Of a stretch of 64,000 nucleotides of DNA, positions 1 through 30,000 are shown one piece after another. Under the pieces are notes generated by a model. It had not been told where the DNA came from. It saw nothing but the letters and a program-made list of their open reading frames with translations, and made no database searches. Positions within the stretch are counted from its first letter, which is position 1. Each line of letters opens with the position of its first letter. This stretch comes from Convolutriloba macropyga. Taxonomy: Eukaryota. The position numbers and the translations under genes were made by a program. The stretch is taken from contig NC_134468.1 in assembly GCF_964194025.1 (NCBI RefSeq), positions 7,192,001-7,256,000 of the forward strand, written 5' to 3'.

Positions 1-312
1 TAGCAGCCGCAAACACAATTCCCACGCCGGCGATTGATGCACGCGCCACACCTGAACCAACAACCGCCATTGTTCTGGCACCCGCTAACGAGGTCACCCC
101 AATTTTGGCAACATTTGGCACTGCACAGGCGAAGCCAATTGCGTTGAGGAAACTGAGATCCCAAATAGCCGCAATTGTGTGATCTGTTTTCGCTCTGTTC
201 ATCATTGTAAGTAACTCTTCAGACAAAAAATTGTCTAGCTGAAGACGCATGTTGACGCGTTTCAAATTTCGCTTTCGTGATATGTATTCGACGATATTCG
301 TAGCAAGGGAAC
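1..312 (-). CDS. Mirror copy of ApoL-like exon 4 (runs off the window)
   Basis: Reverse complement of 29591-29902; open frame; SEEL here versus SEQL in the right copy. Confidence 0.8.
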
Positions 313-751
313 CTACAACCATGAATAAAACTATTCAAACCCATCAAAAATCAACTTAATGTCGCGATAAAGGAGTTCATACAGAAGAAAACCTAGAAAA
401 CTGTTCTCACATTGGAAAACTGAACAAATTTCCATTCCGGAAGATCATAAATGCCTCTTTTGCAGATAATTCACATATCAGTGACTTGCTTCGTAAAATC
501 ACAAAAACAATTAGCAAAAATTGGTCATAATGTGACGCAGTACAATAACATCAGTTAAAGCCCCCCCCCTTTATATAAAACGCGGCATTACACGATAAAA
601 GTAAAACAATGTGTTAACAAGGCAGTTGTGCTTGGGGTTGCTTTTTATGTAAACCCATTAAAATGTGGATACAGACGAAAACTTTTGACAAGAAATTCGA
701 ATCACAAATTTGACAGTTAAAGCTTCTCTATAATTTCAACCCAGTACATAC

Positions 752-1014
752 CAACAGCACCGGTTCCCCCCACAGCTGTTCCAGACACTATAAGAGGAAC
801 ACCCAAACTAGCTCCAAACCCGGTAATAGTAGCTCCTAAGCCCAAAGTAACAGCCACTCCCCCAATCACACATGCTGACAAACTTCCCACTTGAACCTTT
901 GAACCCTTGAGTTCAACACTATCCACCAGAGTTGCAATGTCTCTCAATATTCTGATCGTGGTCCAACGACATTCCAATGAACAAGAAAGATTCGTTTTGA
1001 AGTTTCCCCGATTT
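752..1014 (-). CDS. Mirror copy of ApoL-like exon 3
   Basis: Translation matches the right-arm exon; splice sites intact. Confidence 0.8.
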
Positions 1015-4000
1015 CTGAAAAATATTTTATCCGTAGACGACGTGCTAAATGTTTTTTTTCTCTGTATGATATATGGCTGATAGCGAGCGCGATCGAAAAA
1101 TCAAGAAAAAAAAATCAGAAACGTCCCGAAGAATCGGCTTTGCCAAAAAACAAGCCTGTGATAAAACCACTACATACTAAAACCACTCAAGAAAAATTTT
1201 TAAAAAAAGTAAAGTCAATAAATAACAAACGACTAACGTCGGGAGAATTGCTCTCGGACTACTGGTGGGAGCTCTAACCTATTGCAGTCTCCTTCAGTCA
1301 GGGGGGGGGGGGTAACAACAATCACAAAGTGAGCTTCAAATGACGTCATTAGAGTTTAATAAATAATATACCAATTTAACCCCCCATAAAAATTTAAGGA
1401 AAAAACTGAAACCAATTTTGGCGCACTTGTAAACCGACCTTCACTTTTAGTAGTGAACTGCCGCCCCTTGATATCAGCTCCTTAAATTTGTGAAGAAAAA
1501 CTTAGATCACGCAAAACGAAAGTCATGGGCGCAAAGGTCACTCGTAAAGTCAAATCCCTCAAGCAAAAGTCTTACATTAAAAAGACCAACACTTTCACAA
1601 TAATTGTTTCAAAATTCGTCCAAGAGCAATTAAAACTATGTAGCCTAAAAAACCAACAAAACTAAAAAAAACTCAATTAATTCCTCGTAAAATATAAGTG
1701 CACATAAAACGAAAATCTTTCGTTAAACACGTGAAGATCACAAAAAATGCTCACATAGCAATAGGAAAGTCATACGCTCAAATACATAATCTAAATTTTA
1801 AAATTCCATTTCTGTTTTTTTTTAATTTCTCAGCCAAAAGAAAGTTTTACAACATTGAAATTGAAATAAATTGACACCTAAAAATTCTTTTGAGCATTAG
1901 GCGTCTATTCAATCCGCAATGAATGCAGTGAAACAAAACAGTAGCAAAAAAATGCTGAAGTCGCCTAAGAAACCACTAAATTATCATTAAACCAAAAAAA
2001 GTAAAAACTTAGACTAATAACTAAAAAAAACATTAATACACTATCAAAACAACCTTTTAAATCATTAACATAGCATATTCAAACCTTTAATCAAGAAAAA
2101 ATAGTGAACAAAAAAAGCCGCATGTGAACAAGAAAATGCCTTCGCGTAAATTTTTTTCACTCATTAATTTCCCGCTCTCCGGAAAGCATAATCATGAATC
2201 ACTCATTCTGCTCCACTCCTCTCATTTTGTTCAAAACTTCAAGTCGCAACATTTGAATTTCAAGTTATTAGGTCATAATTGTTCCAATTCCAATTTTGGG
2301 GGTAGAAATTTATGCCAGGCGAACTTTTTTTGTTACAACCTATAGTATAAGGCTAATTTTTATCTTTTGCGTAAAGAATTGAAAAGCCCATAAAAACTGA
2401 TTTTTTATTTAACAGCAAATTATTAATTTATGAGTGTTTACGTGGGCACGTTTGCATGTGAACGCATGTATGTCTCTCTGCACGCGTGTGTGAGAACACA
2501 ATTGTGAGTGTTTGTGCACGTGTGCAAGGGTAGGTTCAATTTTTCAGCTTGATTCAATTTTGCAACAGATTTATTGAGTGCAGCACTTATTGTCTATTGT
2601 TTTTGTCCTTAGTTCTGTTTTTGTATTTCCCATGATTTTGAAAATAATTTTTGGTGTTTTAACTGAGGCGTTTAACTTAACTGCAGAGAATAATAATAAA
2701 TCACAATCAATTGAGGGAAGCTTTCAGAAACAATTTTTCCCTGTTTTTCCCATTTTTCAACTTGCAACTGTGTCCTTTTCTAAGCGCTGCATGTTTCAAG
2801 GAAGAGCTATGATGCAATAGATGGAAAAGTTATTCCACCAGCACAAATTAATTACTGATCAGAGCGGAGTTGAGACGAGCGAAACCGAGTTGAACAAAAC
2901 TCTGGAAACATGCGTTTGAGAACGGGCGCAAAAAACAAAAGTTCAGAAAAGCATCAAATACAAAACTTTGTGTAGTGAATCGTAGGGACCTTACAATCAA
3001 TTACAGAGCTGGAGAAGCAATTGAGATCATATTCATAAGAGGAAATTTTGCAGTCTGGGTCGAGTTTTTGAAATCGATATTTCCAACATAAAACTGACTA
3101 ACGTCGGACAATTTGCTCTCGAACGACATTGCTCTCGAACTTGCTCTCTAAATCGCGGGGCCATTTAATTTAGAGGTGGCTGTAGCCCAGATAATTTTTT
3201 ATGGGTGAAAAAAAAACGCTCAAGGAGAGGTTCGCACACTCGTCCTCCATCGTAATACAATGAAGCATTACAAATCGCCTGTCACTGCCTTGTGCATGCT
3301 TTCTAATCTCTTGTTTTTTTAAAATAAAATCAATTTAAATCACTCAAAAATCAAGAAGTTCAGCACGAAAAATTTCCTATGAAATGAAATCGTAAGAATG
3401 TTCTCGAACAATAAGGCCAGGTAAAAAAATTAAAAAAATCATGTAGTCTTCTCTTTCTGTGCTTGTAGAGCCTGGTAGAGACAGTTTATGTTTTCATATA
3501 GTAATGTCCTTAAAAATGTCCGATGTCATTTCAAAATGACATTTAAAAATGCCATCTGCAGGAAACCTAAGAGAACTTCCAGTGATCACGGATTTGAACA
3601 AACTGTCAAACGAGCAAACCCTTCGAAAAATTTAATCAGCAGAGCGAACTTGAGTTTCGAAAATGTCCACATAGTAAAAAATTTCTTAACATTTCATGTG
3701 AAAATTTTGATCTTTTCTGAACTTTCATAGAGGACGACAAAAATCATCAGGATACCATTCAGAGCAATCTGCTTTAATAATGCTGAGGACACTTCAGGTC
3801 AGCTTAGTTGTAGCTCCTACACTATTGTCTTCGTTGGCTTGATGTCGTGCGGAAGAAACTATTGACGTTGTTCAAGAGTTTTTGATGACCGAATCGAAAT
3901 TTCCAGAGTCTTACTTTGGTGACATCGAGTTCATACTGTTGTTGCATGATCTAGCATATTGATAGTGTTGTTTTACTTTCCACTGTCATCAGAAACAGGC

Positions 4001-4759
4001 ACCGTGTACTTCAGTACATATAGCAACACGAAAGATCCGTTTATGATGCAAACCACACATCTGATGCATGTTAAGTCCCTATCTACATAAGCCTTTAATT
4101 AGCTCAGCGCTTTTTCAGGTCGGCATTCTTCCTCTTCTGATCGTGGAAACGCTTTTTTGTTTTAAACTCAATTTTTTTGTTTGACATTTCTAGTCAACAT
4201 GAAATTTTTGACTTGATAACTCCAAGATCATTCGCCCAGTCATCTAATTGTCTCTTGTTCAAATGTCACTTTACTCTGGAATTTTGGTTCAATTCCAAAA
4301 TTTTGCAGCTCCACGTCTGGATCTTCAGGGAGAGAGCGTGTTCCCTTCGTTATGTTGGCGAGCACGTTGAAGCCATCCGCTTAGTCGAATGGATGTCAGT
4401 TTGAAGCTTTGGAAAGAAGATCGATCATTTAAATAATATCAACATCAGGGCGCCCAAGACTAACCCCAGCAGGACAAAGCTTGTTACTTGGTTCGCTTCT
4501 GATTCACTGATCCCAAATTTGACGCATTGTTTGTGGTTGGAGGCAAGCTTCTAAACACTATCAGTAACTTGCTACCAGTTTCGGTTCATTGTTGGTTTGA
4601 CTTGTCGTAGGCGTTGTTGTTGATGGGTGACTAGGCTGAAGATTTTTCTTTAGTCCCAGTCGTTAATCTTCACTTATTTCTACAATTATAGCAACGGGAG
4701 AATAACTGCAACGTAGAGATGTTTCGACCGAAAACTTCTCGATCGAAAATAACTCCACA

Positions 4760-5570
4760 TTATATTAAAAATACCATTTTTCAATACAACTGATTCTGAT
4801 TTAAGTTTTTTCAGACGGTTCACGATTCGACAAGTTTTAAACAAAAATTAATTTGCAGCTCTGTCCTTAGCAGTACCTACAACACAAAAGCACAATATCA
4901 ACGACTAATATAGTCACCAATTGGATCAGTCTTCACTTAGTGCGAAACAAAATTCAAACAAAGAAATTTGTTTGCTTTTTCATTCCCTCCTCAACATGAA
5001 AACTCGATGATAGGTCATCCTCGACTTGCATTCACAGATCCTTGACAACTGTACGTCATAGATACTGCCCCATTACATAAAAATTGAGATTGTGTCCTCA
5101 AAATTTGGTGATGCGCTTTTCGTCAATGGCATTTTGTTCATCGCTACGCAATGTTTAGGTGCATTAAGATCGTCTTGAAGTAGAAACACTTTTCACTACC
5201 TCTAAGATTTTGAGTTCATCCTAAAAATTGAATGGATTAGAGAAAATCAGAGAGCATTTGGAAGGTCACGCATTGAGATGCAGAACAACAAAAGACCTAG
5301 AGACCATCCTTGTGGACTCTTTGTCCTCATATACACATTTAAGAATTTTACTGTCGATGCTCAAAAATGCAACAAGCAATAGTTTTCAACTTTGCTTCTG
5401 TCCCCTATTTTGTGAATGGAGGTAACACGTGCGACTTCTAAATTGTCTGGAGTTTTTCAGAGCCTCGCGATATTTTCAGAACAATATGTAGTATATCTAT
5501 AGTATACTCTGGTATATCTTCTTTGGGGAATCTTGTTTGGGTCTAATGAGTCAATTAGACTGTTTTTTTT
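4760..5570 (-). mobile_element. Mirror copy of the CR1/L2-like LINE fragment
   Basis: Reverse complement of 24190-25000. Confidence 0.75.
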
Positions 5571-5718
5571 TGGTTTGAACAAAATTACAAAACTTAGACC
5601 AAGTTCTTTTACTTCCACAATTGATGTCGCAATGACATGCAAAAGACATTGAATAATTTCTTTAAACTTAATTCGAGTGAAATTAACCACTCGCCACAAA
5701 CATTAAGCAGCCACTAAC

Positions 5719-6080
5719 TTTTTAAAATGAGGGAACCGCAGCAGCTCCTCGTACAGCACAAGGTCGATTTTGTTCAAGTCACATTCTTCTAATGCAGGCA
5801 ACACTGAAAGCGGTCTTGAATCTGCTTTTCTATCAAACGGGCAGATCACGCCTCCATGTCTAAAGCGATCAAATTTAATGGAAATTTTAACTAGTTTTAC
5901 GAATTCAAATTTATCAACAACATACCTCTGAATTAAAACTTCTAAGCAATTCAAGCAGAAAAAATGACCACAATGAAGGCACAGTAAGTTATAGGAGGCA
6001 AAGCAAATAGGGCAGACCAATTCATCAACTTGGAGTCGCTGATTCTTAGCAGTTTTATCTCGACCATATCTGTTGCCCAT
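5719..6080 (-). CDS. Mirror copy of the RING exons (6080-5926, 5859-5719)
   Basis: Reverse complement of 23680-24041 with intact frame and splice sites; KADSRP here versus KAEPRP in the right copy. Confidence 0.85.
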
Positions 6081-6689
6081 TCTTCTGCCTTATCATGCTG
6101 ACCTTATACATGCGGTTATTAAACTGCTTTCATGAACGAAGAACTGAGCAGCCATCTATGATTCACTGAAAGGATGATTCTCTAGATCAAAGCTAAACAA
6201 TAAAAATACATGATCCCCAAGGAAAAGCTCAAATGAGTAAAAAATCGGAAATTCTGGGTATTACTTTTACCCACAGGTGGTCACACTCTCCATTGTTTAA
6301 TCAATTTTTAGAGGTTTTTCGACATGTTCAACGTCAGTGCGTATTTATTCCTGCATTTTTAACGTCAGTGCATTTACTGGGCTCAGAAAGTACTGCGAAA
6401 ACAGCTTGGTTAACGTTAATGTGCACAGTTTTTCATCAGCTTTAAGATCTCAAATGTAAATTTACACCCCTGTTACAATATATGTCCCTCCGATAGCCAT
6501 ATCCACCCAATTATGATATATGAAGCTCCTTGTGGCTGGGGTAAGGTAGATTATTAAATTAAAAAACCTCAACCCAGTGACGTGAAGCCAACTATTATGT
6601 TTAAGTAAACCAAATGAGTAGTCAGCGTCAGAAACAAAATAAAAATGTAAAGGAAACCAATTTGTCAAACTTAAATTTACTTCCAATAT

Positions 6690-7945
6690 TTAAAACAAAC
6701 GTTTTCGAACTTTACGTTCATCGTCAGGTTAAAACTGTTTTACAAATTGGTAAAAGATAAAATGAATATGTATTTACATTTGTCTGAGACGACAATTAAA
6801 ACAATTCTAGGAACTATTCTACAAAATCAATCAAAAATTTTTCCGTATATACAATATTTAGCCTTTTTACATTTCATATTTACATCTGTAATCAATTTAT
6901 TTAAAAACATTCCTATTCCGGATTTTTCGATTTTGGCCACGTTCTTGTATTTTTAGGGTTATTCCGAATTTGCCCTAATCATAAGTATCCCTCGTGTGGA
7001 GGTTTTGCAAATTTCGTTTTGTCATGCACAAAATGTTTTTTGCCCTATGTATTCTCATTTAGTCAAAATTATGATTTGAACTAACATTTTAGCGTGAGTT
7101 CCCTCCCCCTATATTCATCGCGTGTGTTTAGTGCCGGCTTCAGCTTGCTGATATATATAGCTTCGATAATCATTAGTTTTTCTACTGTCCGACAGGCATC
7201 CAGAATTTTCAATGACATTCGTAGCGCCACGACATTCAACCGGATGTTGACCCACCTGTGCATCCTTCTTTTGATTTTCTGTTATCCTTGTGGTAACATG
7301 CCGGCTTGGTTGCCCAACATAGATGGATCCGCATCCATTACATTTAATCTCATATACCACGTGGGATTTCAGGTCTCTATCGAAAGATGATTTCAGGGTG
7401 GGGAGGCACGATCTTAATTTCCGCGTTGTAAAAACTACTTGCAATTCGTATAGTTTCTTCAGTTTGCTTGCAAAGTTTTGAGTAAGGTTGCCTCTGTATT
7501 GTAGAAAAATAGTTGGCTTATCAACAGGTTTAGTCTTTCTTTTTTGATGCTCTTTTGGCGTTGTTCTTAATTGGTCTTTACCGCCACTTATTATCTTTTC
7601 TAGAGTCTGATTCACTATTTTTGAAGACCATTCCTCTGGATGTTGATATTGGGTCCAGCAAGTTTTGTTCTTTTCAAGAGCGTGATCGAAGGCCAACCAA
7701 TTAGAGGTTGCATTAAAAACCCTGTGAACCGCCCCTTGAATCACATTTTTCTTATGCTGAAGCGGTGCACAGCTGCGAAAATTCAGTATTTTTCCAGTGT
7801 CAGCTGGTTTTTGATACCAATGACAGGTGATATTATTTTTGCTGCTCACATTTACGTTAATGTCAAGAAAAGCCAAATCCCCATCCATGTTCAGTTTTTC
7901 TAAGGTAAACTGCAGGTTGTTATGTAATGAGTTTGCAAATTTTAA
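6690..7945 (-). mobile_element. Penelope-like retroelement, 3' part (RT C-terminus + GIY-YIG endonuclease, frameshifted) with 3' pseudo-LTR region
   Basis: LQFTLE..LAFLDI..WYQKP..LNF (RT thumb); VVYEIKCNGCGSIYVGQ..R..E and EAIYISKLKPALN (GIY-YIG). Boundaries approximate. Confidence 0.9.
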
Positions 7946-8423
7946 AATAAATATGACTCAGGAAATAAATATGACTTATGGATAAAAAATATATATGACT
8001 CAGGAAAAAGCATAAGCAGAACACAGAAAGATTCCGATGCACGAGTTAGAAGACAGAAAGAATGATGAACAATGACAAAAATAAAATGGTAAATTAAGAA
8101 ATTCGCCTCCCCAACACTGGGTGATTATTGGCTGGTCCGGGGGCCTCCCAGCACTACCTTTTCATAGAGCATTTTGTATGGTTAAAATCTATCAATAAAG
8201 TGATATTAAAAACATCAGCTGATAAAGTAAAATAAAAGACAGCATTAGAAAGCAAACTAACAGTCTCCCTTCTTCAAACTAATAGTCTCCCTTCTTCAAC
8301 CACAGCTCCCATCGAAGCTTCAACAATTTCGCATCGCCTAAGCGTCCTTGACCCACGAATGCAGAGGATGGAACTCCTCAGGAGAGCAAAGCTGATTTTT
8401 GTTCTTAGATATGATAGTTTGAG
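7946..8423 (-). mobile_element. 3' end of a CRE-like (RLE-type) non-LTR retrotransposon
   Basis: The minus strand of 8274-8423 reads YLRTKISFALLRSSILCIRGSRTLRR..EEGRLLV*, a C-terminal motif typical of animal CRE-clade elements. It is followed by a 3' UTR with short tandem repeats (ttcctgagtcatat). Confidence 0.7.
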
Positions 8424-11400
8424 TGTCACGCGTATATAAAAAAGATGTACTAAAAACCTTGGGTTTCAAATATAAAGATTTAATTTAAGACGTGACTTAT
8501 TACCTGATTGATGGCTGACAAATATTTGATAGCTGTCGGAAAAGAAAATAAACATTTGATTAGAAAAAGCATGGTTAATTTACCACGATGATAGAACTGA
8601 TATTGGGTGCCGACCAAAGCGAGGATTAACGTCATTCATTGAACATCAAAACCACTATCAGAGCTAACCACTCTAATAATTCATATTTTATTTAAATCAA
8701 ATTTTCTTCACATTGATCTACTTAATAATTTAACTTCCTACTTTGCACTTTAAACAAGTACCACGCTCAATTAGCCAAAGTCATAGAGTATTGCGCACGT
8801 GCAGCTACTATAGTGGCGACAGAGGTTAAAAGTAAATAGGAAACCACCACCCAATAATATTGAGCGTCGTTCAGATTTCTAAAAGAAATCTATTTTTTGT
8901 TTGCCGTCCAAAACCAACTTTTGACACGAGTCTGCCGTCTTAACATCACAACCCGAAAGAGGAATTTCGAACTGGTGTCGGGATTCGACGGGAACACTGC
9001 CATCTCGGAACTTTCAATTGAGAACTCCCTAAATTTTCGAGTAGTAGAAATCGGGTCGTATATCGTTTTTCGATAATAAACTAGGGTTCAAAATCAAGCG
9101 TATTTAAATTCGAAAAAATTTGACTTACAAATATACCAATGAACCTCGAGTTTTTTGTTTTGTTTTAAAGAAATACAGTGTCAATAAGATTTAGGGGCTG
9201 CTGTGTTAGAGAATCAAAAAAGTAGGTCGGGTTTTGAACTAATATTTTGAAATATGTTGAATAACAGCAACTTTTTCATAATACACGGATGGCGCGCCAC
9301 TCTTCAAAAACGCTTTTACTAGAGCCTCTTAAGGGTTCAATTGATTTGGATAGGTATGTTGCAGTTTTTGAGTTTTTGTCACAACTTCAGAAGTGGCAAA
9401 AAAAACATTAAGTGAAATTGATGAGCGGCCGATTATTTTGCGTTAAGGCCACAAAAGTTGACTATTGATTTCTATCGTACACTTTGGGAGGACACTAGAA
9501 AGAGCTAGAAAATAAAAAATATAGAGAACGCCTTCTTCATCTTGCATGGAATACTTATTTATTTTTGACTGTATCTTAAACCCCATTAAAAACGAACTCC
9601 TTTGCAGGAAAATTGGTAAAAGATTACGACTGTCCCCATCACAACGAAAAAATAAGAATTTGTTTTCAATTGTTGCAGAGGATCACGATTTACCTCGTCG
9701 CTTCAAAGGTTTCATCAAAGGCAAAATCATCAATGAAGAAGGTAACAAAATACAACAAATAGAAATTATAGTCCAGCCAATTAAAGAGTTTGAAGACAAG
9801 TCACTTATATTGATAACGAGATTGCTAAGTTACATGATTGATGATGTCGTGTGGGTTTGTGTTCCAAACTCTATATTAAAAAAATTAGATAAATGCTACA
9901 ATCGAATGTAAGGAAAACATTGAAAAAACTTAAAGAATACTTGAAACCCCCCCCCCCCCAAATCGAAAAGATACAGATGAATTTGAACTTGAAAAGCATG
10001 TGAACGCAAGTTCAATCAGTTTGTCTTGTGAGGAAATGTCAAAAATGAGGTCATTTTGCGCAAATTATGAAATAATATTTTGGCGAAGTTCTTATGATAC
10101 GGGATTTTGCGACTGAATTATCATAAAACAAAACTAAAAAAGGATGCTATGCCATTCAGTCGTACATAAAGCAGCTTGAGTCTCGAAAAAAAAGCCATTG
10201 AAAGAGTTGTTGAAGACTTGGAACGAGAGGACTTAGTTAAAACAACACATTCCGATTGGGCAGCGTCCTATTTCTTGTACCTACCAAAAAAATGGAACCT
10301 GTCGCTTGGTTTTAGACTACCTTGTTCTGAACAAACAAATCGAGAAAACATTCTGGCATTTACCACGAAGTAAGGAGGTTATTGATTCCTTGGAGAGAAA
10401 CATGTACTTCTTGAACATTGAACTATTGTCCAGATACTTTCAGAAGGCGCTCGAGGAAGAGAGTCAGAATTTAACAACTTTCAAAACGCCTCTGGGCCTG
10501 TATATGTGGATAAAACTTCCTATCGGACTGGCGTCTAGACTGGGAGTTTTTTAAAACCTAATGGAGTTACTTTTTGCTGGCCTCTCTTACGAAATGCTCT
10601 AGTGTATCTAGATGACGTTATCGTTTTCGCCAGAAGTTTCGACAAACATCTGAAACGATTAGAACGGGTTTTCCAACGTTTAACGTAGAATGGATTAAAG
10701 AATAATGAAACCAAACGCAATTTTTTTCAAAGCGTGTCAGCTTCTTTGGGCACATTATATTCGAGAGTGGAGTGGAGGTCGACCCCGAGAACTTAAGAGC
10801 GATAGAAAGAATGAAAGAACCATCCTCACTGAGAGACGTCAAGGCCTTTCTAGGCCTTGTGGGCTATATCGAAAAATTATTCAGGGTTTCGGAAAACAGC
10901 AGGACCTATTTACAGGTTACTGAATGAGTCAATTAAACTTAAATGGAACACAGAATGCAAAAGTGTGGCAACCGAGCTAAAGAAGGTTTTTATTTGTTAT
11001 TTAAAGAAGGGAATTCTTTGCACTCGGCCCTTTACGCAAAATTTAAAAACTATTTACTTGGCCAGCTAGTTTCAATTATAACGGACTAACGGGCTTTTGT
11101 CTGGATCTATAATTTTAAAGAATCAGTCGGTATGGTTAGAAGATGTATAGAGAAACTGGGGCAATTTAGTTCTGAAATCAAGCACAGAGCAGGCAAAAAA
11201 GTCCCACACGCTAACTGTCTGTCGCGGATAAATACAGAAGTTGATTAGCAGACAGATTTTGTTAACCCGATTACGAAAGTCGCAGAGCAAGACAAAACCG
11301 ACTATGATAGTCGAATTTGAAAATTGAAAACTGTACTCATGGGTACTAAACAAAAAAAGACCGGAGCCATGGCAGATGAAAAATGGAGCATCAAAGGAGT

Positions 11401-13708: not shown

Positions 13709-13714
13709 ATCTGC

Positions 13715-14432
13715 TTTATTCGGCTTGCGAAAGTTCATAACCCAACAGGTTATGGGCCCGGCAATTTTCTAAGTCATTAAACTAATTTATAAAACAAAAC
13801 TAGTTTGTTGTTGACAGTCACAATCCTTTTCTGCTTAGTACCTTTTCTTTTCACAACTGTTTTGCCTGCTCCAACTACGATTGATCAACAGACAGTGAAG
13901 CTGCTGACCTACACAGGAAAGGCACAGGAACTTCCAATCTGGAGCACATGATTTGTGGCAATGATGCAGACGAAGGGACTCTACAAATCACTACTGGAGA
14001 CAAAAGAGCAACCCAATGAGCCTGCTCCACTGGTCAATGGGGCAACCAATGATGAAAAGAAGAACCACAAGGTGCTGAAAGATGGATATGAGAAGGAAGT
14101 TGCAGACATCAAGGAGAAACGAAACAATATGTGATGGCATCTGGCACTGATTCTGGATGCAGCAACCCTCATGCTGATGAGAAATGACTGTATGTTAGAT
14201 GATGGCATTGGAGATGAAGCAAAGGCTTGGAAGCTTTTGCAATAGATATTTCAGAGTATGGAGACGCCGACAGTGGTGACTTTGGTGGCACAGCTTGCTC
14301 GAATGCAGGTCGAGGATGATGAGGATTTGGATAGCTTCTTCATCAGAGGACAGGAGTTGCTCAAAAGGCTACAAGAAGCAGGGGAAGCAGTCTCAGAGAC
14401 ACTCTTCAACGCCCTGGTCCTCAATGGTCTGC
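13715..14432 (+). mobile_element. Ty1/copia 5' fragment: LTR end, PBS, decayed gag
   Basis: The LTR end ..CCCAACA (13747) is followed directly by GGTTATGGGCCC (13748-13759), the copia half-tRNAiMet PBS. Gag reads AKAWKLL..LARMQVEDDEDLDSFFIRGQELLKRLQEAGEAVSETLFNALVLNGL (UBN2-like). Confidence 0.9.
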
Positions 14433-14440
14433 GAATGGTC

Positions 14441-18100: not shown

Positions 18101-21100
18101 TGTTCAACAAACGCTCTTGACACGGTTTTTGCCTTTTGTTTGACTAATGCTACGTTTTCGTACCAGTCACTGAATTAATTAACAATAAGCAAAACGTACT
18201 TGTTTCCCTGATAATCGGGAAGTGGACCCATGATATCAAAAGATACTTGCCAAAAGGAATGACTAAGTTTTTTTTGCGAGTGAAAGCCGATGTTTCTGTT
18301 TAGTGCATTTTCTTTATAAGCACACGTCACAGCTTTCTGTCCAGTTCCTTGCGTCTCATCTCATTCACGGCCAAAAAAATCTTTCAGATGCCCTTCGGCA
18401 TGTTTTCTCAATTCCAAAGTGACCTGCGCTAGGAGAGTCATGCAACAGCTGAAGCACGTTGGACACTATTTCCCATGATACAAGCATTTGGTAAACAGTC
18501 CCAAAGTTGGGTTCTGTTTGGTGTTTACGAAACAAAATCAATTCTTTGAGACAAAGATTTGTGTACTGAACCCCGTATTTCCATAACTCCTTTGATGCTC
18601 CATTTTTCATCTGCCATGGCTCCGGTCTTTTTTGTTTAGTACCCAGGAGTATAGTTTTCAATTTTCAAATTCGACTATCATAGTCGGTTTTGTCTTGCTC
18701 TGCGTCCTTCGTAATCGGGTTAACGAAATCTGTCTGCTAATCAACTTCTGTATTTATCCGCGACAGACAGTTAGCGTGTGGGACTTTTTTGCCTGCTCTG
18801 TGCTTGATTGTTGCGTAAAGGGCCGAGTGCAAATAATTCCCTTCTTTAAATAACAAATAAAAACCTTCTTTAGCTCGGTTGCCACACTTTTGCATTCTGT
18901 GTTCCATTTAAGTTTAATTGACTCATTCAGTAACCTGTAAATAGGTCCTGCTGTTTTCCGAAACCCTGAATAATTTTTCGATATAGCCCACAAGGCCTAG
19001 AAAGGCCTTGACGTCTCTCAGTGAGGATGGTTCTTTCATTCTTTCTATCGCTCTTAAGTTCTCGGGGTCGACCTCCACTCCACTCTCGAATATAATGTGC
19101 CCAAAGAAGCTGACACGCTTTGAAAAAAATTGCATTTGGTTCCATTAATCTTTAATCCATTCAACGTTAAACGTTGGAAAACCCGTTCTAACCGTTTCAG
19201 GTGTTTGTCGAAATTTCTGGCGAAAACGATAACGTCATCTAGATACACTAGAGCATTTCGTAAGAGAGGCCAGCAAAAAGTAACTCCATTAGGTTTTAAA
19301 AAACTCCCAGTCTAGATGCCAGTCCGATAGGAAGTTTTATCCACATATACAGGCCCAGAGGCGTTTTGAAAGTTGTTAAATTCTGACTCTCTTCCTCGAG
19401 CGCCTTCTGAAAGTATCTGGACAATAGTTCAATGTTCAAGAAGTACATGTTTCTCTCCAAGGAATCAATAACCTCCTTACTTCGTGGTAAAGGCCAGAAT
19501 GTTTTCTCGATTTGTTTGTTCAGAACAAGGTAGTCTAAAACCAAGCGACAGGTTCCATTTTTTTGGTAGGTACAAGAAATAGTGACGCTGCCCAATCGGA
19601 ATGTGTTGTTTTAACTAAGTCCTCTCGTTCCAAGTCTTCAACAACTCTTTCGATGGCTTTTTTTTTCAAGACTCAAGCTGCTTTATGTACGACTGAATGG
19701 CATAGCATCCTTTTTTAGTTTTATTTTATGATAATTTAGTCGCAAAATCCCGTATCATAAGAACTTCGCCAAAATATTATTTCATAATTTGCGCAAAATG
19801 ACCTCATTTTTGACATTTCCTCAAAGACAAACTGATTGAACTTCCGTTCACATTCTTTTCAAGTTCAAATTCATCTGTATCTTTTGGATTTGGGGGGGTT
19901 TATTTTCAAGTATTCTTTAAATTTTTTCAATGTTTTCCTTACATTCGATTGTAGCATTTATCTAATTTTTTTAATATAGAGTTTGGAACACAAACCCACA
20001 CGACATCATCAATCATGTAACTTAGCAATCTCGTTATCAATATATGTGACTTGTCTTTAAACTCTTTAATTGGCTGGACTATAATTTCTATTTGTTGTAT
20101 TTTGTTACCTTCTTCATTGATGATTTTGCCTTTAATGAAACCTTTGAAGCGACGAGGTAAATCGTGATCCTCTGCAACAATTGAAAACAAATTCTTATTT
20201 TTTCGTTGTGATGGGGACAGTCGTAATCTTTTACCAATTTTCCTGCAAAGGAGTTCTTTCTTACTGTGGTTTAAGATACAATCAAAATTAAATAAGTATT
20301 CCATGCAAGATGAAGAAAGCGTTGTCTATATTTTATATTTTCTAGCTCTTTCTAGTGCCCTCCCAAAGTGTACGATAGAAATCAATAGTCAACTTTTGTG
20401 GCCTTAACGCAAAATAATCGGCCGCTCATCAATTTCACTTACTGTTTTTTTTTGCCACTTCTGAAGTTGTGACAAAAACTGAAAAAGTGCAACATAACTA
20501 TCGAAATCAATTGAACCCTTAAAAGGCTCTAGTAAAAGCGTTTTTGAAGAGTGGCGCGCCATCCGTGTTTTATGAAAAAGTTGCTGTTATTCAACATATT
20601 TCAATATATTAGTTCAAAACCCTACCTACTTTTGTTGATTCTCTAACACAGCAGCCCTTAAATCTTATTGACACTGTATTTCTTTAAAACAAAACAAAAA
20701 ACTCGAGGTTCATTGGTATATTTGTAAGTCAAATTTTGTCGAATTTAAATACGCTTGATTTTGAACCCTAGTTTATTATCGAAAAAAGATATACGACCCG
20801 ATTTCCACTACTCGAAAATTTAGGGAGTTCTCAATTGAAAGTTCCGAGATGGCAGTGTTCCCGTCGAATCCCGACACCAGTTCGAAATTCATCTTTCGGG
20901 TTGTGATGTTAAGACGGCAGACTCGTGTCAAAAGTTGGTTTTGGACGGCAAACAAAAAATAGATTTCTTTTAGAAATCTGTACGACGCTCAATATTATTG
21001 GGTGGTGGTTTCCTATTTACTTTTAACCTCTGTCGCCACTATAGTAGCTGCACGTGCGCAATACTCTATGACTTTGGCTAATTGAGCGTGGTACATGTTT

Positions 21101-21428
21101 AAAATGCAAAGTAGGAAGTTAAATTATTAAGTAGATCAATGTGAAGAAAATTTGATTTAAATAAAATATGAATTATTAGAGTGGTTAGCTCTGATAGTGG
21201 TTTTGATGTTCAATGAATGAATTTAATCCTCGCTTTAGTCGGCACCCAATATCAGTTCTATCATCGTGGTAATTTAACCATGCTTTTTCTGATCAAATGT
21301 TTATTTTCTTTTCCGACACCTATCAAATATTTGTCAGCCATCAATCAGGTAATAAATCTCGTCTTAAATTAAATCTTTAAATTTGAAACCCAAGGTTTTT
21401 AGTACATCTTTTTTATATACGCGTGACA
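15194..21428 (-). mobile_element. Mirror copy of the gypsy element; keeps about 1.1 kb more of the env-like region and lacks about 136 bp of RNase H
   Basis: Mirrored ORFs (19296-19595 RT, 19054-19248 YLDD, 18365-18661 IN); PBS at 21027-21038. Confidence 0.93.
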
Positions 21429-21899
21429 CTCAAGCTATCATATCTAAGAACAAAAATCAGCTTTGCTCTTCTGAGGAGTTCCATCCTCTGCATTCGTGGG
21501 TCAAGGACGCTTAGGCGTTGCGAAATTGTTGAAGCTTCGATGGGAGCTGTGGTTGAAGAAGGGAGGCTATTAGTTTGAAGAAGGGAGACTGTTAGTTTGT
21601 TTTCTAATGCTGTCTTTCATTTTATTTTATCAGTTGATGTTTTTAATATCACTTTATTGATAGATTTTAACAATACAAAATGCTCTATGAAAACGTAGTG
21701 CTGGGAGGGCCCCGGACCAGCCAAAAATCACCCAGTGTTTGGGAGGCGAATTTCTTAATTTACCTTTTTTTTGTCATTGTTGATCATTCTTTCTGTCTTC
21801 TAACTCGTGCATCGGAATCTTTCTGTGTTCTGCTTATGCTTCTTCCTGAGTCATATATATTTTTTATCCATAAGTCATATTTATTTCCTGAGTCATATT
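21429..21899 (+). mobile_element. Mirror copy of the CRE-like 3' end
   Basis: RTKISFALLRSSILCIRGSR at about 21447-21507; stop at 21576-21578. Confidence 0.7.
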
Positions 21900-23070
21900 T
21901 ATTTTAAAATTTGCAAACTCAATACATAACAACCTGCAATTGGTATCAAAAACCAGCTGACACTGGAAAAATACTGAATTTTCGCAGCTGTGCACCGCTT
22001 CAGCATAAGAAAAATGTGATTCAAGGGGCGGTTCACAGGGTTTTTAATGCAACCTCTAATTGGTTGGCCTTCGATCACGCTCTTGAAAAGAACAAAACTT
22101 GCTGGACCCAATATCAACATCCAGAGGAATGGTCTTCAAAAATAGTGAATCAGACTCTAGAAAAGATAATAAGTGGCGGTAAAGACCAATTAAGAACAAC
22201 GCCAAAAGAGCATCAAAAAAGAAAGACTAAACCTGTTGATAAGCCAACTATTTTTCTACAATACAGAGGCAACCTTACTCAAAACTTTGCAAGCAAACTG
22301 AAGAAACTATACGAATTGCAAGTAGTTTTTACAACGCGGAAATTAAGATCGTGCCTCCCCACCCTGAAATCATCTTTCGATAGAGACCTGAAATCCCACG
22401 TGGTATATGAGATTAAATGTAATGGATGCGGATCCATCTATGTTGGGCAACCAAGCCGGCATGTTACCACAAGGATAACAGAAAATCAAAAGAAGGATGC
22501 ACAGGTGGGTCAACATCCGGTTGAATGTCGTGGCGCTACGAATGTCATTGAAAATTCTGGATGCCTGTCGGACAGTAGAAAAACTAATGATTATCGAAGC
22601 TATATATATCAGCAAGCTGAAGCCGGCACTAAACACACGCGATGAATATAGGGGGAGGGAACTCACGCTAAAATGTTAGTTCAAATCATAATTTTGACTA
22701 AATGAGAATACATAGGGCAAAAAACATTTTGTGCATGACAAAACGAAATTTGCAAAACCTCCACAAGAGGGATACTTATGATTAGGGCAAATTCGGAATA
22801 ACCCTAAAAATACAAGAACGTGGCCAAAATCGAAAAATCCGGAATAGGAATGTTTTTAAATAAATTGATAACAGATGTAAATATGAGTTGTAAAAAGGCT
22901 AAATATTGTATATACGGAAAAATTTTCGATTGATTTTGTAGAATAGTTCCTAGAATTGTTTTAATTGTCGTCTCAGACAAATTTAAATACATATTCATTT
23001 TATCTTTTACCAATTTGTAAAACAGTTTTAACCTGACGATGAACGTAAAGTTCGAAAACGTTTGTTTTAA
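21900..23070 (+). mobile_element. Mirror copy of the Penelope-like element (lacks the 89 bp equivalent to 7822-7910)
   Basis: ORFs 21911-22645 and 22497-22679 mirror 7115-7888 and 7081-7263. Confidence 0.9.
23033..23063 (+). ncRNA. Degenerate minimal hammerhead ribozyme motif in the Penelope pseudo-LTR (mirror copy at 6697-6727, minus strand)
   Basis: CTGACGA-t-GAAC(gtaaa)GTTC-GAAA-acgtt gives the core boxes, stem II and a palindromic stem III, about 350 bp after the PLE stop codon. Stem I and the cleavage triplet are imperfect. Confidence 0.6.
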
Positions 23071-23679
23071 ATATTGGAAATAAATTTAAGTTTGACAAAT
23101 TGGTTTCCTTTACATTTTTATTTTGTTTCTGACGCTGACTACTCATTTTGTTTACTTAAACATAATAGTTGGCTTCACGTCACTGGGTTGAGGTTTTTTA
23201 ATTTAATGATCTATCTTACCCCAGCCACAAGGAGCTTCATATATCATAATCGGGTGGATATGGCTATCGGAGGGCCATATATTGTAACAGGGGTGTAAAT
23301 TTACATTTGAGATCTTAAAGCTGATGAAAAACTGTGCACATTAACGTTAACCAAGCTGTTTTCGCAGTACTTTCTGAGCCCAGTAAATGCACTGACGTTA
23401 AAAATGCAGGAATAAATACGCACTGACGTTGAACATGTCGAAAAACCTCTAAAAATTGATTAAACAATGGAGAGTGTGACCTTCTGTGGGTAAAAGTAAT
23501 ACCCAGAATTTCCGATTTTTTACTCATTTGAGCTTTTCCTTGGGGATCATGTATTTTTATTGTTTAGCTTTGATCTAGAGAATCATCCTTTCAGTGAATC
23601 ATAGATGGCTGCTCAGTTCTTCGTTCATGAAAGCAGTTTAATAACCGCATGTATAAGGTCAGCATGATAAGGCAGAAGA

Positions 23680-24041
23680 ATGGGCAACAGATATGGTCGA
23701 GATAAAACTGCTAAGAATCAGCGACTCCAAGTTGATGAATTGGTCTGCCCTATTTGCTTTGCCTCCTATAACTTACTGTGCCTTCATTGTGGTCATTTTT
23801 TCTGCTTGAATTGCTTAGAAGTTTTAATTCAGAGGTATGTTGTTGATAAATTTGAATTCGTAAAACAAGTTAAAATTTCCATTAAATTTGATTGCTTTAG
23901 ACATGGAGGCGTGATCTGCCCGTTTGATAGAAAAGCAGAACCAAGACCGCTTTCAGTGTTGCCTGCATTAGAAGAATGTGACTTGAACAAAATCGACCTT
24001 GTGCTGTACGAGGAGCTGCTGCGGTTCCCTCATTTTAAAAA
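23680..24041 (+). CDS. Exons 1-2: RING-HC zinc finger (66-bp in-frame intron at 23835-23900)
   Basis: CPIC..CGHFFCLNC..CPFD motif. The intron gtatgt...tttag removes an AT-rich stretch and restores RING spacing. Donor gttagt at 24042. Confidence 0.85.
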
Positions 24042-27000
24042 GTTAGTGGCTGCTTAATGTTTGTGGCGAGTGGTTAATTTCACTCGAATTAAGTTTAAAG
24101 AAATTATTCAATGTCTTTTGCATGTCATTGCGACATCAATTGTGGAAGTAAAAGAACTTGGTCTAAGTTTTGTAATTTTGTTCAAACCAAAAAAAAACAG
24201 TCTAATTGACTCATTAGACCCAAACAAGATTCCCCAAAGAAGATATACCAGAGTATACTATAGATATACTACATATTGTTCTGAAAATATCGCGAGGCTC
24301 TGAAAAACTCCAGACAATTTAGAAGTCGCACGTGTTACCTCCATTCACAAAATAGGGGACAGAAGCAAAGTTGAAAACTATTGCTTGTTGCATTTTTGAG
24401 CATCGACAGTAAAATTCTTAAATGTGTATATGAGGACAAAGAGTCCACAAGGATGGTCTCTAGGTCTTTTGTTGTTCTGCATCTCAATGCGTGACCTTCC
24501 AAATGCTCTCTGATTTTCTCTAATCCATTCAATTTTTAGGATGAACTCAAAATCTTAGAGGTAGTGAAAAGTGTTTCTAGTTCAAGACGATCTTAATGCA
24601 CCTAAACATTGCGTAGCGATGAACAAAATGCCATTGACGAAAAGCGCATCACCAAATTTTGAGGACACAATCTCAATTTTTATGTAATGGGGCAGTATCT
24701 ATGACGTACAGTTGTCAAGGATCTGTGAATGCAAGTCGAGGATGACCTATCATCGAGTTTTCATGTTGAGGAGGGAATGAAAAAGCAAACAAATTTCTTT
24801 GTTTGAATTTTGTTTCGCACTAAGTGAAGACTGATCCAATTGGTGACTATATTAGTCGTTGATATTGTGCTTTTGTGTTGTAGGTACTGCTAAGGACAGA
24901 GCTGCAAATTAATTTTTGTTTAAAACTTGTCGAATCGTGAACCGTCTGAAAAAACTTAAATCAGAATCAGTTGTATTGAAAAATGGTATTTTTAATATAA
25001 TGTGGAGTTATTTTCGATCGAGAAGTTTTCGGTCGAAACATCTCTACGTTGCAGTTATTCTCCCGTTGCTATAATTGTAGAAATAAGTGAAGATTAACGA
25101 CTGGGACTAAAGAAAAATCTTCAGCCTAGTCACCCATCAACAACAACGCCTACGACAAGTCAAACCAACAATGAACCGAAACTGGTAGCAAGTTACTGAT
25201 AGTGTTTAGAAGCTTGCCTCCAACCACAAACAATGCGTCAAATTTGGGATCAGTGAATCAGAAGCGAACCAAGTAACAAGCTTTGTCCTGCTGGGGTTAG
25301 TCTTGGGCGCCCTGATGTTGATATTATTTAAATGATCGATCTTCTTTCCAAAGCTTCAAACTGACATCCATTCGACTAAGCGGATGGCTTCAACGTGCTC
25401 GCCAACATAACGAAGGGAACACGCTCTCTCCCTGAAGATCCAGACGTGGAGCTGCAAAATTTTGGAATTGAACCAAAATTCCAGAGTAAAGTGACATTTG
25501 AACAAGAGACAATTAGATGACTGGGCGAATGATCTTGGAGTTATCAAGTCAAAAATTTCATGTTGACTAGAAATGTCAAACAAAAAAATTGAGTTTAAAA
25601 CAAAAAAGCGTTTCCACGATCAGAAGAGGAAGAATGCCGACCTGAAAAAGCGCTGAGCTAATTAAAGGCTTATGTAGATAGGGACTTAACATGCATCAGA
25701 TGTGTGGTTTGCATCATAAACGGATCTTTCGTGTTGCTATATGTACTGAAGTACACGGTGCCTGTTTCTGATGACAGTGGAAAGTAAAACAACACTATCA
25801 ATATGCTAGATCATGCAACAACAGTATGAACTCGATGTCACCAAAGTAAGACTCTGGAAATTTCGATTCGGTCATCAAAAACTCTTGAACAACGTCAATA
25901 GTTTCTTCCGCACGACATCAAGCCAACGAAGACAATAGTGTAGGAGCTACAACTAAGCTGACCTGAAGTGTCCTCAGCATTATTAAAGCAGATTGCTCTG
26001 AATGGTATCCTGATGATTTTTGTCGTCCTCTATGAAAGTTCAGAAAAGATCAAAATTTTCACATGAAATGTTAAGAAATTTTTTACTATGTGGACATTTT
26101 CGAAACTCAAGTTCGCTCTGCTGATTAAATTTTTCGAAGGGTTTGCTCGTTTGACAGTTTGTTCAAATCCGTGATCACTGGAAGTTCTCTTAGGTTTCCT
26201 GCAGATGGCATTTTTAAATGTCATTTTGAAATGACATCGGACATTTTTAAGGACATTACTATATGAAAACATAAACTGTCTCTACCAGGCTCTACAAGCA
26301 CAGAAAGAGAAGACTACATGATTTTTTTAATTTTTTTACCTGGCCTTATTGTTCGAGAACATTCTTACGATTTCATTTCATAGGAAATTTTTCGTGCTGA
26401 ACTTCTTGATTTTTGAGTGATTTAAATTGATTTTATTTTAAAAAAACAAGAGATTAGAAAGCATGCACAAGGCAGTGACAGGCGATTTGTAATGCTTCAT
26501 TGTATTACGATGGAGGACGAGTGTGCGAACCTCTCCTTGAGCGTTTTTTTTTCACCCATAAAAAATTATCTGGGCTACAGCCACCTCTAAATTAAATGGC
26601 CCCGCGATTTAGAGAGCAAGTTCGAGAGCAATGTCGTTCGAGAGCAAATTGTCCGACGTTAGTCAGTTTTATGTTGGAAATATCGATTTCAAAAACTCGA
26701 CCCAGACTGCAAAATTTCCTCTTATGAATATGATCTCAATTGCTTCTCCAGCTCTGTAATTGATTGTAAGGTCCCTACGATTCATTATACAAAGTTTTGT
26801 ATTTGATGCTTTTCTGAACGTTTGTTTTTTGCGCCCGTTCTCAAACGCATGTTTCCAGAGTTTTGTTCAACTCGGTTTCGCTCGTCTCAACTCCGCTCTG
26901 ATCAGTAATTAATTTGTGCTGGTGGAATAACTTTTCCATCTATTGCATCATAGCTCTTCCTTGAAACATGCAGCGCTTAGAAAAGGACACAGTTGCAAGT

Positions 27001-30000
27001 TGAAAAATGGGAAAAACAGGGAAAAATTGTTTCTGAAAGCTTCCCTCAATTGATTTTGATTTAATATGTATTCGCCGCAGTTAAGTTAAACGCCTCAGTT
27101 AAAACAGACGAAAATTATTTTCAAAATCATGGGTGGCCAAAAACTGTTGGCGTGCTGAATTGGCTATGTTTTCAATCAAAGCTACAGACTTAAAGAACAT
27201 TGCGTTGAGACCTTAAAGTTAATCAGAAGCAAATCGGAAAAGAAATAGGACAAAAACAGAACTTAGGACAAAAACAGGAGACAATAAATGCTGCACTCAA
27301 TAAATCTGTTGCAAAATTGAATCAAGTTAGTGGTGTATAAGTATCTCTCCCACACACACGACCAAGCACCTACCCTTGCACACATGCACAAACACTCTCA
27401 ATTGTGTTCTCACACACGCGTGCAGAGAGACATACATGCGTTCACATGCAAACGTGCCCACGTAAACACTCATAAATTAATAATTTGCTGTGAAATAAAA
27501 AATCAGTTTTTATGGGCTTTTCAATTCTTTACGCAAAAGATAAAAATTAGCCTTATACTATAGGTTGTACAAAAAAATTCGCCTAGCATAAATTTCCTAC
27601 CCCAAAATTCGAATTGGAACAATTATGACTTAATAACTTGGAATTCAAATGTTGCGACTTGAAGTTTTGAACAAAATGAGAGGAGTGGAGCAGAATGAGT
27701 GATTCATGATTATGCTTTCCGGAGAGCGGGAATTTAATGAGTGAAAAAAAATTACGCGAAGGCATTTTCTTGTACATGCGGCTTTTTTTGTTCACTATTT
27801 TTCTTGATTAAAGGTTTGAATATGCTATGTTAATGATTTAAAAGGTTGTTTTGATAGTGTATTAATGTTTTTTTTTAGTTATTAGTCTAAGTTTTTACTT
27901 TTTTTGGTTTAATGATAATTTAGTGGTTTCTTAGGCGACTTCAGCATTTTTTTGCTACTGTTTTGTTTCACTGCATTCATTGCGGATTGAATAGACGCCT
28001 AATGCTCAAAAGAATTTTTAGGTGTCAATTTATTTCAATTTCAATGTTGTAAAACTTTCTTTTGGCTGAGAAATTAAAAAAAAACAGAAATGGAATTTTA
28101 AAATTTAGATTATGTATTTGAGCGTATGACTTTCCTATTGCTATGTGAGCATTTTTTGTGATCTTCACGTGTTTAACGAAAGATTTTCGTTTTATGTGCA
28201 CTTATATTTTACGAGGAATTAATTGAGTTTTTTTTAGTTTTGTTGGTTTTTTAGGCTACATAGTTTTAATTGCTCTTGGACGAATTTTGAAACAATTATT
28301 GTGAAAGTGTTGGTCTTTTTAATGTAAGACTTTTGCTTGAGGGATTTGACTTTACGAGTGACCTTTGCGCCCATGACTTTCGTTTTGCGTGATCTAAGTT
28401 TTTCTTCACAAATTTAAGGAGCTGATATCAAGGGGCGGCAGTTCACTACTAAAAGTGAAGGTCGATTTACAAGTGCGCCAAAATTGGTTTCAGTTTTTTC
28501 CTTAAATTTTTATGGGGGGTTAAATTGGTATATTATATATTAAACTCTAATGACGTCATTTGAAGCTCACTTTGTGATTGTTGTTACCCCCCCCCCCTGA
28601 CTGAAGGAGACTGCAATAGGTTAGAGCTCCCACCAGTAGTCCGAGAGCAATTCTCCCGACGTTAGTCGTTTGTTATTTATTGACTTTACTTTTTTTAAAA
28701 ATTTTTCTTGAGTGGTTTTAGTATGTAGTGGTTTTATCACAGGCTTGTTTTTTGGCAAAGCCGATTCTTCGGGACGTTTCTGATTTTTTTTTCTTGATTT
28801 TTCGATCGCGCTCGCTATCAGCCATATATCATACAGAGAAAAAAAACATTTAGCACGTCGTCTACGGATAAAATATTTTTCAGAAATCGGGGAAACTTCA
28901 AAACGAATCTTTCTTGTTCATTGGAATGTCGTTGGACCACGATCAGAATATTGAGAGACATTGCAACTCTGGTGGATAGTGTTGAACTCAAGGGTTCAAA
29001 GGTTCAAGTGGGAAGTTTGTCAGCATGTGTGATTGGGGGAGTGGCTGTTACTTTGGGCTTAGGAGCTACTATTACCGGGTTTGGAGCTAGTTTGGGTGTT
29101 CCTCTTATAGTGTCTGGAACAGCTGTGGGGGGAACCGGTGCTGTTGGTATGTACTGGGTTGAAATTATAGAGAAGCTTTAACTGTCAAATTTGTGATTCG
29201 AATTTCTTGTCAAAAGTTTTCGTCTGTATCCACATTTTAATGGGTTTACATACAAAGCAACCCCAAGCACAACTGCCTTGTTAACACAATGTTTTACTTT
29301 TATCGTGTAATGCCGCGTTTTATATAACGGGGGGGGGGGGGGCTTTAACTGATGTTATTGTACTGCGTCACATTATGACCAATTTTTGCTAATTGTTTTT
29401 GTGATTTTACGAAGCAAGTCACTGATATGTGAATTATCTGCAAAAGAGGCATTTATGATCTTCCGGAATGGAAATTTGTTCAGTTTTCCAATGTGAGAAC
29501 AGTTTTCTAGGTTTTCTTCTGTATGAACTCCTTTATCGCGACATTAAGTTGATTTTTGATGGGTTTGAATAGTTTTATTCATGGTTGTAGGTTCCCTTGC
29601 TACGAATATCGTCGAATACATATCACGAAAGCGAAATTTGAAACGCGTCAACATGCGTCTTCAGCTAGACAATTTTTTGTCTGAGCAGTTACTTACAATG
29701 ATGAATAGAGCGAAAACAGATCACACAATTGCGGCTATTTGGGATCTCAGTTTCCTCAACGCAATTGGCTTCGCCTGTGCAGTGCCAAATGTTGCCAAAA
29801 TTGGGGTGACCTCGTTAGCGGGTGCCAGAACAATGGCGGTTGTTGGTTCAGGTGTGGCGCGTGCATCAATCGCCGGCGTGGGAATTGTGTTTGCGGCTGC
29901 TATGATTCCGATTGACGTTGTCCAGTTGGTGCATAACACTCTAAAAGTACATTCCCAGACTCCGTCTAAGTTGGTAAAGGAGATCAGGTGCGAACAAATG

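Follow-up and report, generated by a model that had tools for sequence, protein, structure and literature searches.

A probable one-haplotype palindrome with gene-bearing 40-kb arms and a 42-nt spacer on chromosome 1 of Convolutriloba macropyga

Fold-back inverted duplications, which arise through a hairpin-capped break, breakage-fusion-bridge cycles or a replicative template switch, are known from yeast, from human constitutional rearrangements and from cancer amplicons. On mammalian sex chromosomes, palindromes show more than 99.9% identity along the whole arm and have spacers on the kb scale; these ampliconic palindromes are reportedly kept by arm-to-arm gene conversion, in accounts from 2003 that are ascribed to Skaletsky et al. 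and Rozen et al. Maize Mu killer and Drosophila hairpin RNA (hpRNA) loci consist of inverted partial transposon copies that yield hairpin RNA. Adjacent copies can also be a product of genome assembly, and haplotypic false duplications in primary assemblies of heterozygous genomes are the problem that purge_dups targets. In this paper we looked at a large palindrome on chromosome 1 of the acoel worm Convolutriloba macropyga, which is centred in a 64-kb stretch of DNA referred to here as the window (G000:C1:7192001-7256000 of assembly txConMacr16.3; negative coordinates lie upstream of the window). Our analysis suggests that the palindrome is probably real and probably carried by one haplotype only, while the other haplotype holds a single-copy version of the region, which we call T.

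Inside the window, which contains no N, positions 1-14398 and 14441-29902 are reverse complements of one another. The matching blocks are 0.7-5.2 kb long with 97.2-99.4% identity and, because of this length and identity, the inverted match is not there by chance. A preliminary description of the window, made from its letters, had claimed a gene-bearing palindrome around a 42-nt spacer and proposed a comparison with the upstream contig sequence. The claim is borne out, and the structure is longer than the window: in a self-comparison that included 60 kb upstream and 20 kb downstream on the same scaffold, collinear inverted homology carries on from window -25044 to 56331. The whole structure measures 81.4 kb. 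The left arm is 39.4 kb long, starting at window -25044 and occupying 1-14398 (plus strand) within the window, and the right arm, its inverted copy (14441-56331, minus strand), is 41.9 kb long and runs into the right flank as the single-copy T does. The gene order outward in each arm is a RING-finger exon, ApoL-like exons, an RPAP1 gene made of a single open reading frame (ORF) and an SLC2/MFS transporter. The non-palindromic spacer at 14399-14440 is 42 nt in size, and a transposable element (TE) of the left arm continues through it to 14437 (TE positions 1263-1300). Permitting a 1-nt bulge extends the pairing by 3 nt (14438-14440, GTC, with 14398-14400) and shortens the spacer to 37 nt. Thus, the locus has what is expected of a large palindrome, namely two collinear inverted arms of high identity and a short asymmetric spacer that is continuous with the left arm.

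The two arms are similar and not identical. The pair of differing sequences beside the centre that was quoted in the preliminary description, as well as its four arm-specific indels, were all found in their places. Two segments are present in the left arm only (about 7838-7910 and 11043-11175) and two in the right arm only (15126-16280 and 27134-27249). The segment at 15126-16280 consists of the 5' part of the central TE and of another repeat, and its counterpart in the left arm is reduced to 6 nt at 13709-13714. A further arm-specific insertion, of a multi-copy TE, spans window -19450 to -15914. The difference between the arms that is nearest to the joint is 113 nt away from it, and a 1155-bp indel is found 685 nt away.

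Along the arms, the identity falls into two tiers. As far out as left -220 and right ~30100 (right arm 14441-30100, minus strand, against left -220 to 14398) the arms are 97-100% identical, including more than 2 kb without any difference; this inner 15 kb contains the RING and ApoL-like exons as well as the promoter, and its edge lies just past the ApoL-like exon. Further out, the outer 25 kb with RPAP1 and SLC2 shows 91-96% identity, many TE indels and tract-like mosaicism. The step between the tiers is sharp, from more than 99% to ~93%, with a mismatch every 10-15 bases just beyond the edge. Expressed as divergence, the arms differ by 0-3.4% in the inner part and by 4-9% in the outer part. 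The preliminary description regarded the duplication as old, which does not hold uniformly: the 14.4 kb on which the description was based is young or homogenised (0-3% divergence), and the older part lies beyond what it covered. The tolerance that it also ascribed to the duplication is a presumption.

The strongest evidence regarding the origin of the left arm comes from ENA ERZ25071359, a second assembly of the sequenced animal, which was reached by exact-protein look-ups and was built from the same reads as the primary assembly. Its contig ctg34825_58x_l (165,936 nt) contains both arms at the same spacing; it begins at window -24638, and its ends differ from those of the scaffold contig. 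Over window -4297 to 45790, the centre included, it is identical to the scaffold, and beyond this range 5 of 20,561 bases differ. Two assemblers therefore cross the joint identically, and there is no competing continuation. We infer, on the basis of one amplified library, that the joint is present in the DNA of the animal.

The same second assembly holds T, on contig ctg31672_64x_l (84,376 nt), with its own RING ORF, ApoL ORF, intact 1109-aa RPAP1 and SLC2 gene. T is absent from the primary assembly, in which no third copy of 2700-6200, of 12540-13712 or of RPAP1 is found either. From 21932 outward T follows the right arm collinearly, past the outer end of the palindrome at 56331 and into the flank to at least window ~68200, with ~93% identity, and it has nothing homologous to the innermost 7.5 kb of either arm. 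Upstream of the RING exon of T (L043:1-8100, L045:1-16000) another TE nest replaces this innermost 7.5 kb; its ORFs have a weak match to the Pox_A32 ATPase, it is Maverick/Polinton-like and it occurs in many copies of 80-92% identity.

In contrast to these three versions of the arm genes, the flank exists in two. The product of a flanking actin exon is found on exactly two contigs of ERZ25071359, that of the right flank and that of the T flank; this count of flank haplotypes rests on the actin exon, and most other ORFs of the right flank are not in the protein collection. The actin gene is located 8 kb past the outer end of the palindrome, at window 64202-65641 (L021:202-762, minus strand), and its exon product is identical on both haplotype contigs. 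Two further assemblies, ERZ25071366 and ERZ25878734, were considered as orthologous context and rejected, since only actin exons match there, at 85%. Left, right and T versions of the RING, ApoL, RPAP1 and SLC2 ORFs are all present in the assembly of one specimen and, taken together with two versions of the flank and assuming a diploid animal, they indicate that the left arm is an extra copy and not a plain allele. A false haplotypic duplication would leave only two versions in the individual, and here T is present as a third. The relation between the three versions points in the same direction. The inner blocks group left with right as sisters, at a distance of 6-12% from T. Sites with left equal to right and different from T outnumber both alternative patterns, with counts of 140:6:3, 48:3:2, 55:1:0, 143:0:0 and 93:5:1, from which it follows that the left arm is not T folded back.

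The position of the joint gives a clue to its formation. The centre sits inside a truncated copia-like long terminal repeat (LTR) retrotransposon, the reference full-length copy of which is 5498 nt long with 611-nt LTRs that are 99.8% alike. The fragment in the left arm (13715-14437, plus strand) covers TE positions 578-1300 of 5498 and has no LTR, and the fragment in the right arm (14441-15701, minus strand) covers TE positions 1-1262; its 5' LTR is complete (611 nt, 15092-15701) and faces the centre. Both arms end in the same element, at most 37 nt apart; this is what a fold-back predicts, and it is not predicted by random ligation or by a dispersed duplicate. A fold-back or template switch inside the retrotransposon may thus have created the palindrome: one strand would end at TE 1300, copying would resume on the complementary strand at 1262, and a loop of 37-42 nt would be left. 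No useful microhomology is found at the joint. The arm differences at 113 nt and 685 nt from the joint rule out the snap-back of a single molecule during the polymerase chain reaction (PCR), which would give identical arms.

One could also suggest that the left arm is a real inverted extra copy and that only the 42-nt centre is false, the assemblers having skipped complete retrotransposons and a longer, unassembled spacer. The surroundings offer some ground for this: the repeat around the centre occurs more than 40 times in the genome at ~93% identity to the local fragment, and the contiguity of the assembly is low (contig N50 0.19 Mb; PMC13650328). Yet, the local copy is 7-10% diverged from every other copy, so that reads should resolve it, the element has no internal inverted repeat that is able to give a false overlap, and the joint is identical in the products of two assemblers. 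From -60 to +84 kb neither the remaining part of the copia-like element nor a rival continuation was found. We regard a false centre as very improbable.

Following a fold-back, arm-to-arm gene conversion or a more recent re-duplication of the inner part would have given the arms their present form. In the outer blocks the distances among the left arm, the right arm and T are about equal, with the shortest branch leading to the right arm. Individual tracts within RPAP1 behave differently from one another: 34832-35431 contains 51 left-specific and no T-specific differences, and 33632-34231 contains 27 T-specific and seven left-specific differences. This mosaic fits a right arm that has swapped sequence with both its allele T and its palindromic partner. 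The step at ~30100 would either delimit a large tract converted between the arms or stem from a younger fold-back, resolved within an inverted repeat that already existed.

Short reads were used as another source of evidence, in the form of bubble-popped Logan contigs from four runs (three samples, one study) that were aligned to 11421-17420. Between 11630 and 12682 every alternative letter equals the letter of the other arm. In the bubble at 12068-12202 the left and right versions have depths of 29.7 and 20.3 in run X2 (shared stretches about 44), 15 and 13 in run X3 (shared stretches 25-30), 2.0 and 2.6 in run X4 (shared stretches about 4.5) and 17 and 44 in run X1 (shared stretches about 44-48). 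Both arm versions are thus present at about 1:1 in three samples (the values of X2, X3 and X4), where shared stretches have ~2x that depth. The idea that the arm differences are segregating alleles was dropped: bubble-popping in Logan hides one variant, and the complex bubbles that survive show both versions in every sample. No third allele is seen in the short-read contigs of 11421-17420, where only two versions are to be expected because T is without the innermost 7.5 kb. The arm-specific contigs have half the depth of the arm-shared stretches, a ratio that is uncalibrated since the 6-kb stretch contains no single-copy control. These short-read depths fit a hemizygous innermost region, which T is without.

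Several observations weigh against a real palindrome on one haplotype, and the first of them concern the reads. No short-read contig crosses the centre; the contigs break in the high-copy TE, which dominates the depth. When the ORF that spans the joint was used as a probe of other runs, it matched only on the ENA contig. The coverage labels of the ENA contigs are a further difficulty: they read 58x for the palindrome, 64x for T and 17x for the neighbouring contig, while the reported overall coverage of ~64x for a diploid (PMC13650328) leads one to expect ~30x per haplotype, so that the one-haplotype model fits them poorly. The labels of the host contigs (ctg23370_17x_l, ctg34825_58x_l, ctg31672_64x_l) differ more than 3-fold, consistent with a strong amplification bias, and this spread limits any inference on ploidy. 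They are either noise or a hint at a palindrome that is homozygous. In that case the palindrome is real on both haplotypes, and T, a homozygous segmental duplication in its own right (at least 60 kb, ~93%), was purged from the primary assembly by mistake. Both 58x and 64x are indeed about twice the expected depth of one haplotype, and the short-read contigs of the central 6 kb contain only two versions, as a homozygous palindrome would have. However, T is missing from the primary assembly, which would be the normal fate of an allele but not of a paralog in two copies, it is collinear with the right arm and flank over the whole examined contig stretch, and labels that include a neighbour at 17x are noisy. 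A homozygous palindrome is therefore, in our view, an improbable solution.

Other points that weigh against it come from the way in which the genome was assembled. The txConMacr16.3 library was a PCR-amplified ultra-low-input HiFi library with reads of ~8 kb, which was assembled by hifiasm --primary followed by purge_dups and YaHS (PMC13650328). The heterozygosity of the genome is 3.65%, the primary assembly exceeds the k-mer estimate by 36% (1176 Mb against 867 Mb), and 224 haplotypic duplications were taken out by hand (PMC13650328). From the amplified library, the heterozygosity, the excess and the number of removals, it follows that false duplications are common in this assembly. The inner-arm divergence of 0-3.4% is within the heterozygosity of the individual, and the outer divergence of 4-9% is similar to that between the right arm and T. 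Both assemblies were built from the same amplified reads. In both, the left arm stands at a contig end. Its outer flank on the scaffold is a 5'-truncated fragment resembling a long interspersed nuclear element (LINE), and from there an (ATGT)n array of at least 4.3 kb leads up to a 200-N scaffold gap at -30868 to -30669. Read on the same plus strand, the neighbouring contig stops in an (ACAT)n array of at least 6.4 kb, as it does in the ENA assembly, and this array is bordered by different sequence. An attempt to anchor the left arm to this neighbour failed, as the (ACAT)n and (ATGT)n arrays meet head to head, and with opposed arrays across the gap the outer side of the left arm has no sequence anchor. 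The facing arrays are located at L020:9332-10000 plus L019:1-3669 (window -30668 to -26331) and at L053:1-6400 / L046:19452-20378; they may be a coincidence of scaffolding or else mark another inverted joint. Three versions of the arm genes would also be found in an animal that is triploid or trisomic.

All of this can be combined into one artefact, in which the arms are two haplotypes that were joined back-to-back by a chimeric fold-back PCR molecule and T is either a wrongly purged paralog or the third haplotype of a triploid or trisomic animal. Besides the nature of the library and the assembly excess, such a misjoin would account for a left-right divergence that averages about the genome-wide heterozygosity and is patchy in the way typical of alleles, and for a left arm that forms a terminal contig spur in both assemblies, with a homology that stops at a LINE and microsatellite insertion beyond which nothing is assembled. 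The labels of 58x and 64x would then look like two-copy depth, as expected with homozygosity of both the right flank and T. On the other side, this explanation requires more than two haplotypes, or the erroneous purge of a homozygous paralog of at least 60 kb; the arms of the chimera would have to come from different haplotypes, with a switch within 113 nt of the joint; both haplotypes would be left with no assembled continuation past TE 1300 in two assemblers; and the joint itself shows no useful microhomology. Triploidy seems less likely given that C. macropyga reproduces sexually in addition to budding (PMC13650328). In the literature on palindromic chimeras in ultra-low-input libraries we found only general statements on PCR bias. 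The preliminary description had itself named a misjoin of two haplotypes as the scenario that would overturn it, and a third version beside a flank of only two versions makes this scenario unlikely. We therefore keep a real palindrome on one haplotype as the preferred explanation.

The genes in the arms give some indication of what happens to such duplicated copies. The RING-finger exon ORFs (left 5703-6080, minus strand; right 23680-24057, plus strand) were compared as ORFs and differ at 4 of 125 residues. All four differences are found within residues 63-88, outside the zinc-binding motif, in surrounding DNA that is 99.3% identical. The ApoL-like exon ORFs (right 29581-30030, plus strand; left window -127 to 322, minus strand) differ at 1 of 149 residues. 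These exons have no Pfam match at E <= 0.1, and the ApoL label rests solely on a protein-atlas feature search (score 0.93). The two divergently transcribed RING/ApoL-like copies of the earlier claim are supported.

RPAP1 was expected by the preliminary description to be duplicated if the arm extended further; it does, and RPAP1 is found in both arms, as is the SLC2/MFS transporter. The right RPAP1 (32473-35790, plus strand) is an intact ORF of 1105 aa, to which a short terminal exon is added in RefSeq, and the protein has the Pfam domains RPAP1_N, RPAP1_C and TPR_RPAP1. The left copy (window -7482 to -4102, minus strand; L017:2518-5898) has one premature stop, in frame at codon 258. The divergence between the two copies amounts to a dS of 0.115 and a dN of 0.034, with a dN/dS of 0.30. 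RefSeq calls both copies protein-coding, and its model of the left one, XP_075251793.1, omits 22 residues around the stop; the left RPAP1 may thus be a pseudogene that was annotated as a gene. The SLC2/MFS sugar-transporter ORF of the right arm (53448-55109, plus strand) encodes 553 aa, and its copy in the left arm is at L019:6146-7807, minus strand. The arrangement of RING/ApoL-like exons and RPAP1 is the same in left, right and T.

Other repeats are found in the neighbourhood of these genes. In the right flank, at window about 73500-82600 (L021/L022), there are tandem units of ~3.15 kb with ~87% identity, which the T haplotype matches at ~80%. A 2.7-kb segment of the right arm, at window 45509-48782, is partly tandem-duplicated with an offset of 612 nt. 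Its best inverted match (93.5%) is not in the left arm; it is located at -37448 to -34769 (L020), on the contig to the left of the gap. With weaker copies at -10793 to -8623, this segment is probably a repeat family.

If the palindrome is real, it is a natural animal palindrome with 40-kb arms and almost no spacer, a structure that is usually considered unstable. The unduplicated haplotype in the same individual provides a built-in comparison, in an early-branching bilaterian that also reproduces clonally, and this would permit the dating of arm-to-arm gene conversion and the measurement of palindrome stability over time. The fate of duplicated genes would be visible as well, with one RPAP1 decaying and both RING/ApoL-like copies kept nearly identical. 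If the structure is an artefact, it serves as a warning that amplified HiFi assemblies of very heterozygous genomes could hold gap-free fold-back duplications which are missed by purge_dups and Hi-C curation and which inflate gene counts.

The 685-bp inverted TE pair at the centre has a predicted near-perfect hairpin fold of -1347 kcal/mol. By analogy with the loci named above, and provided that the LTR is active, a transcript that starts from it and runs through the 42-nt loop could fold into 685 bp of hairpin RNA directed at the gag leader of a copia-like family with young copies, which would make the centre a natural "transposon-killer" on one haplotype; we consider this a doubtful role. 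The locus resembles Mu killer and the Drosophila hpRNA loci in having inverted partial copies of a TE, here a 685-nt pair, and only one arm retains the LTR, which points at the centre. It differs in that the TE accounts for just 1.3 kb at the inner end of a 40-kb arm, where it may be incidental, and in that the locus is known from DNA only.

Compared with haplotypic false duplications, the likeness lies in the adjacent copies, in an inner divergence that is within heterozygosity and in an assembly that retains many such duplications; here, however, a third version is found beside a diploid flank, and a gap-free joint is reproduced by two assemblers. With the palindromes of mammalian sex chromosomes the locus shares multi-gene arms of tens of kb and a tract-like homogenisation, as seen in the stretch of more than 2 kb without differences and in the tracts where left equals right and differs from T. 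Unlike in those palindromes, the identity of more than 99.9% along the whole arm is not reached: the arms are identical only in patches, and only the inner 15 kb is homogenised while the outer 25 kb remains at 91-96%. The spacer of 42 nt, a chromosome with no known link to sex and the probable heterozygosity are further differences. The closest resemblance is to fold-back inverted duplications, which likewise have inverted arms, an asymmetric spacer of tens of bases that is continuous with one arm, and little or no microhomology. The palindrome of C. macropyga differs from them in being interstitial and apparently stable, with a divergence of 1-3% in the inner and 5-9% in the outer part and with arm-specific TE insertions, and in that the outer joint of its left arm runs into a gap. 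Based on this comparison, the structure belongs to a known kind, that of the fold-back inverted duplication or palindrome.

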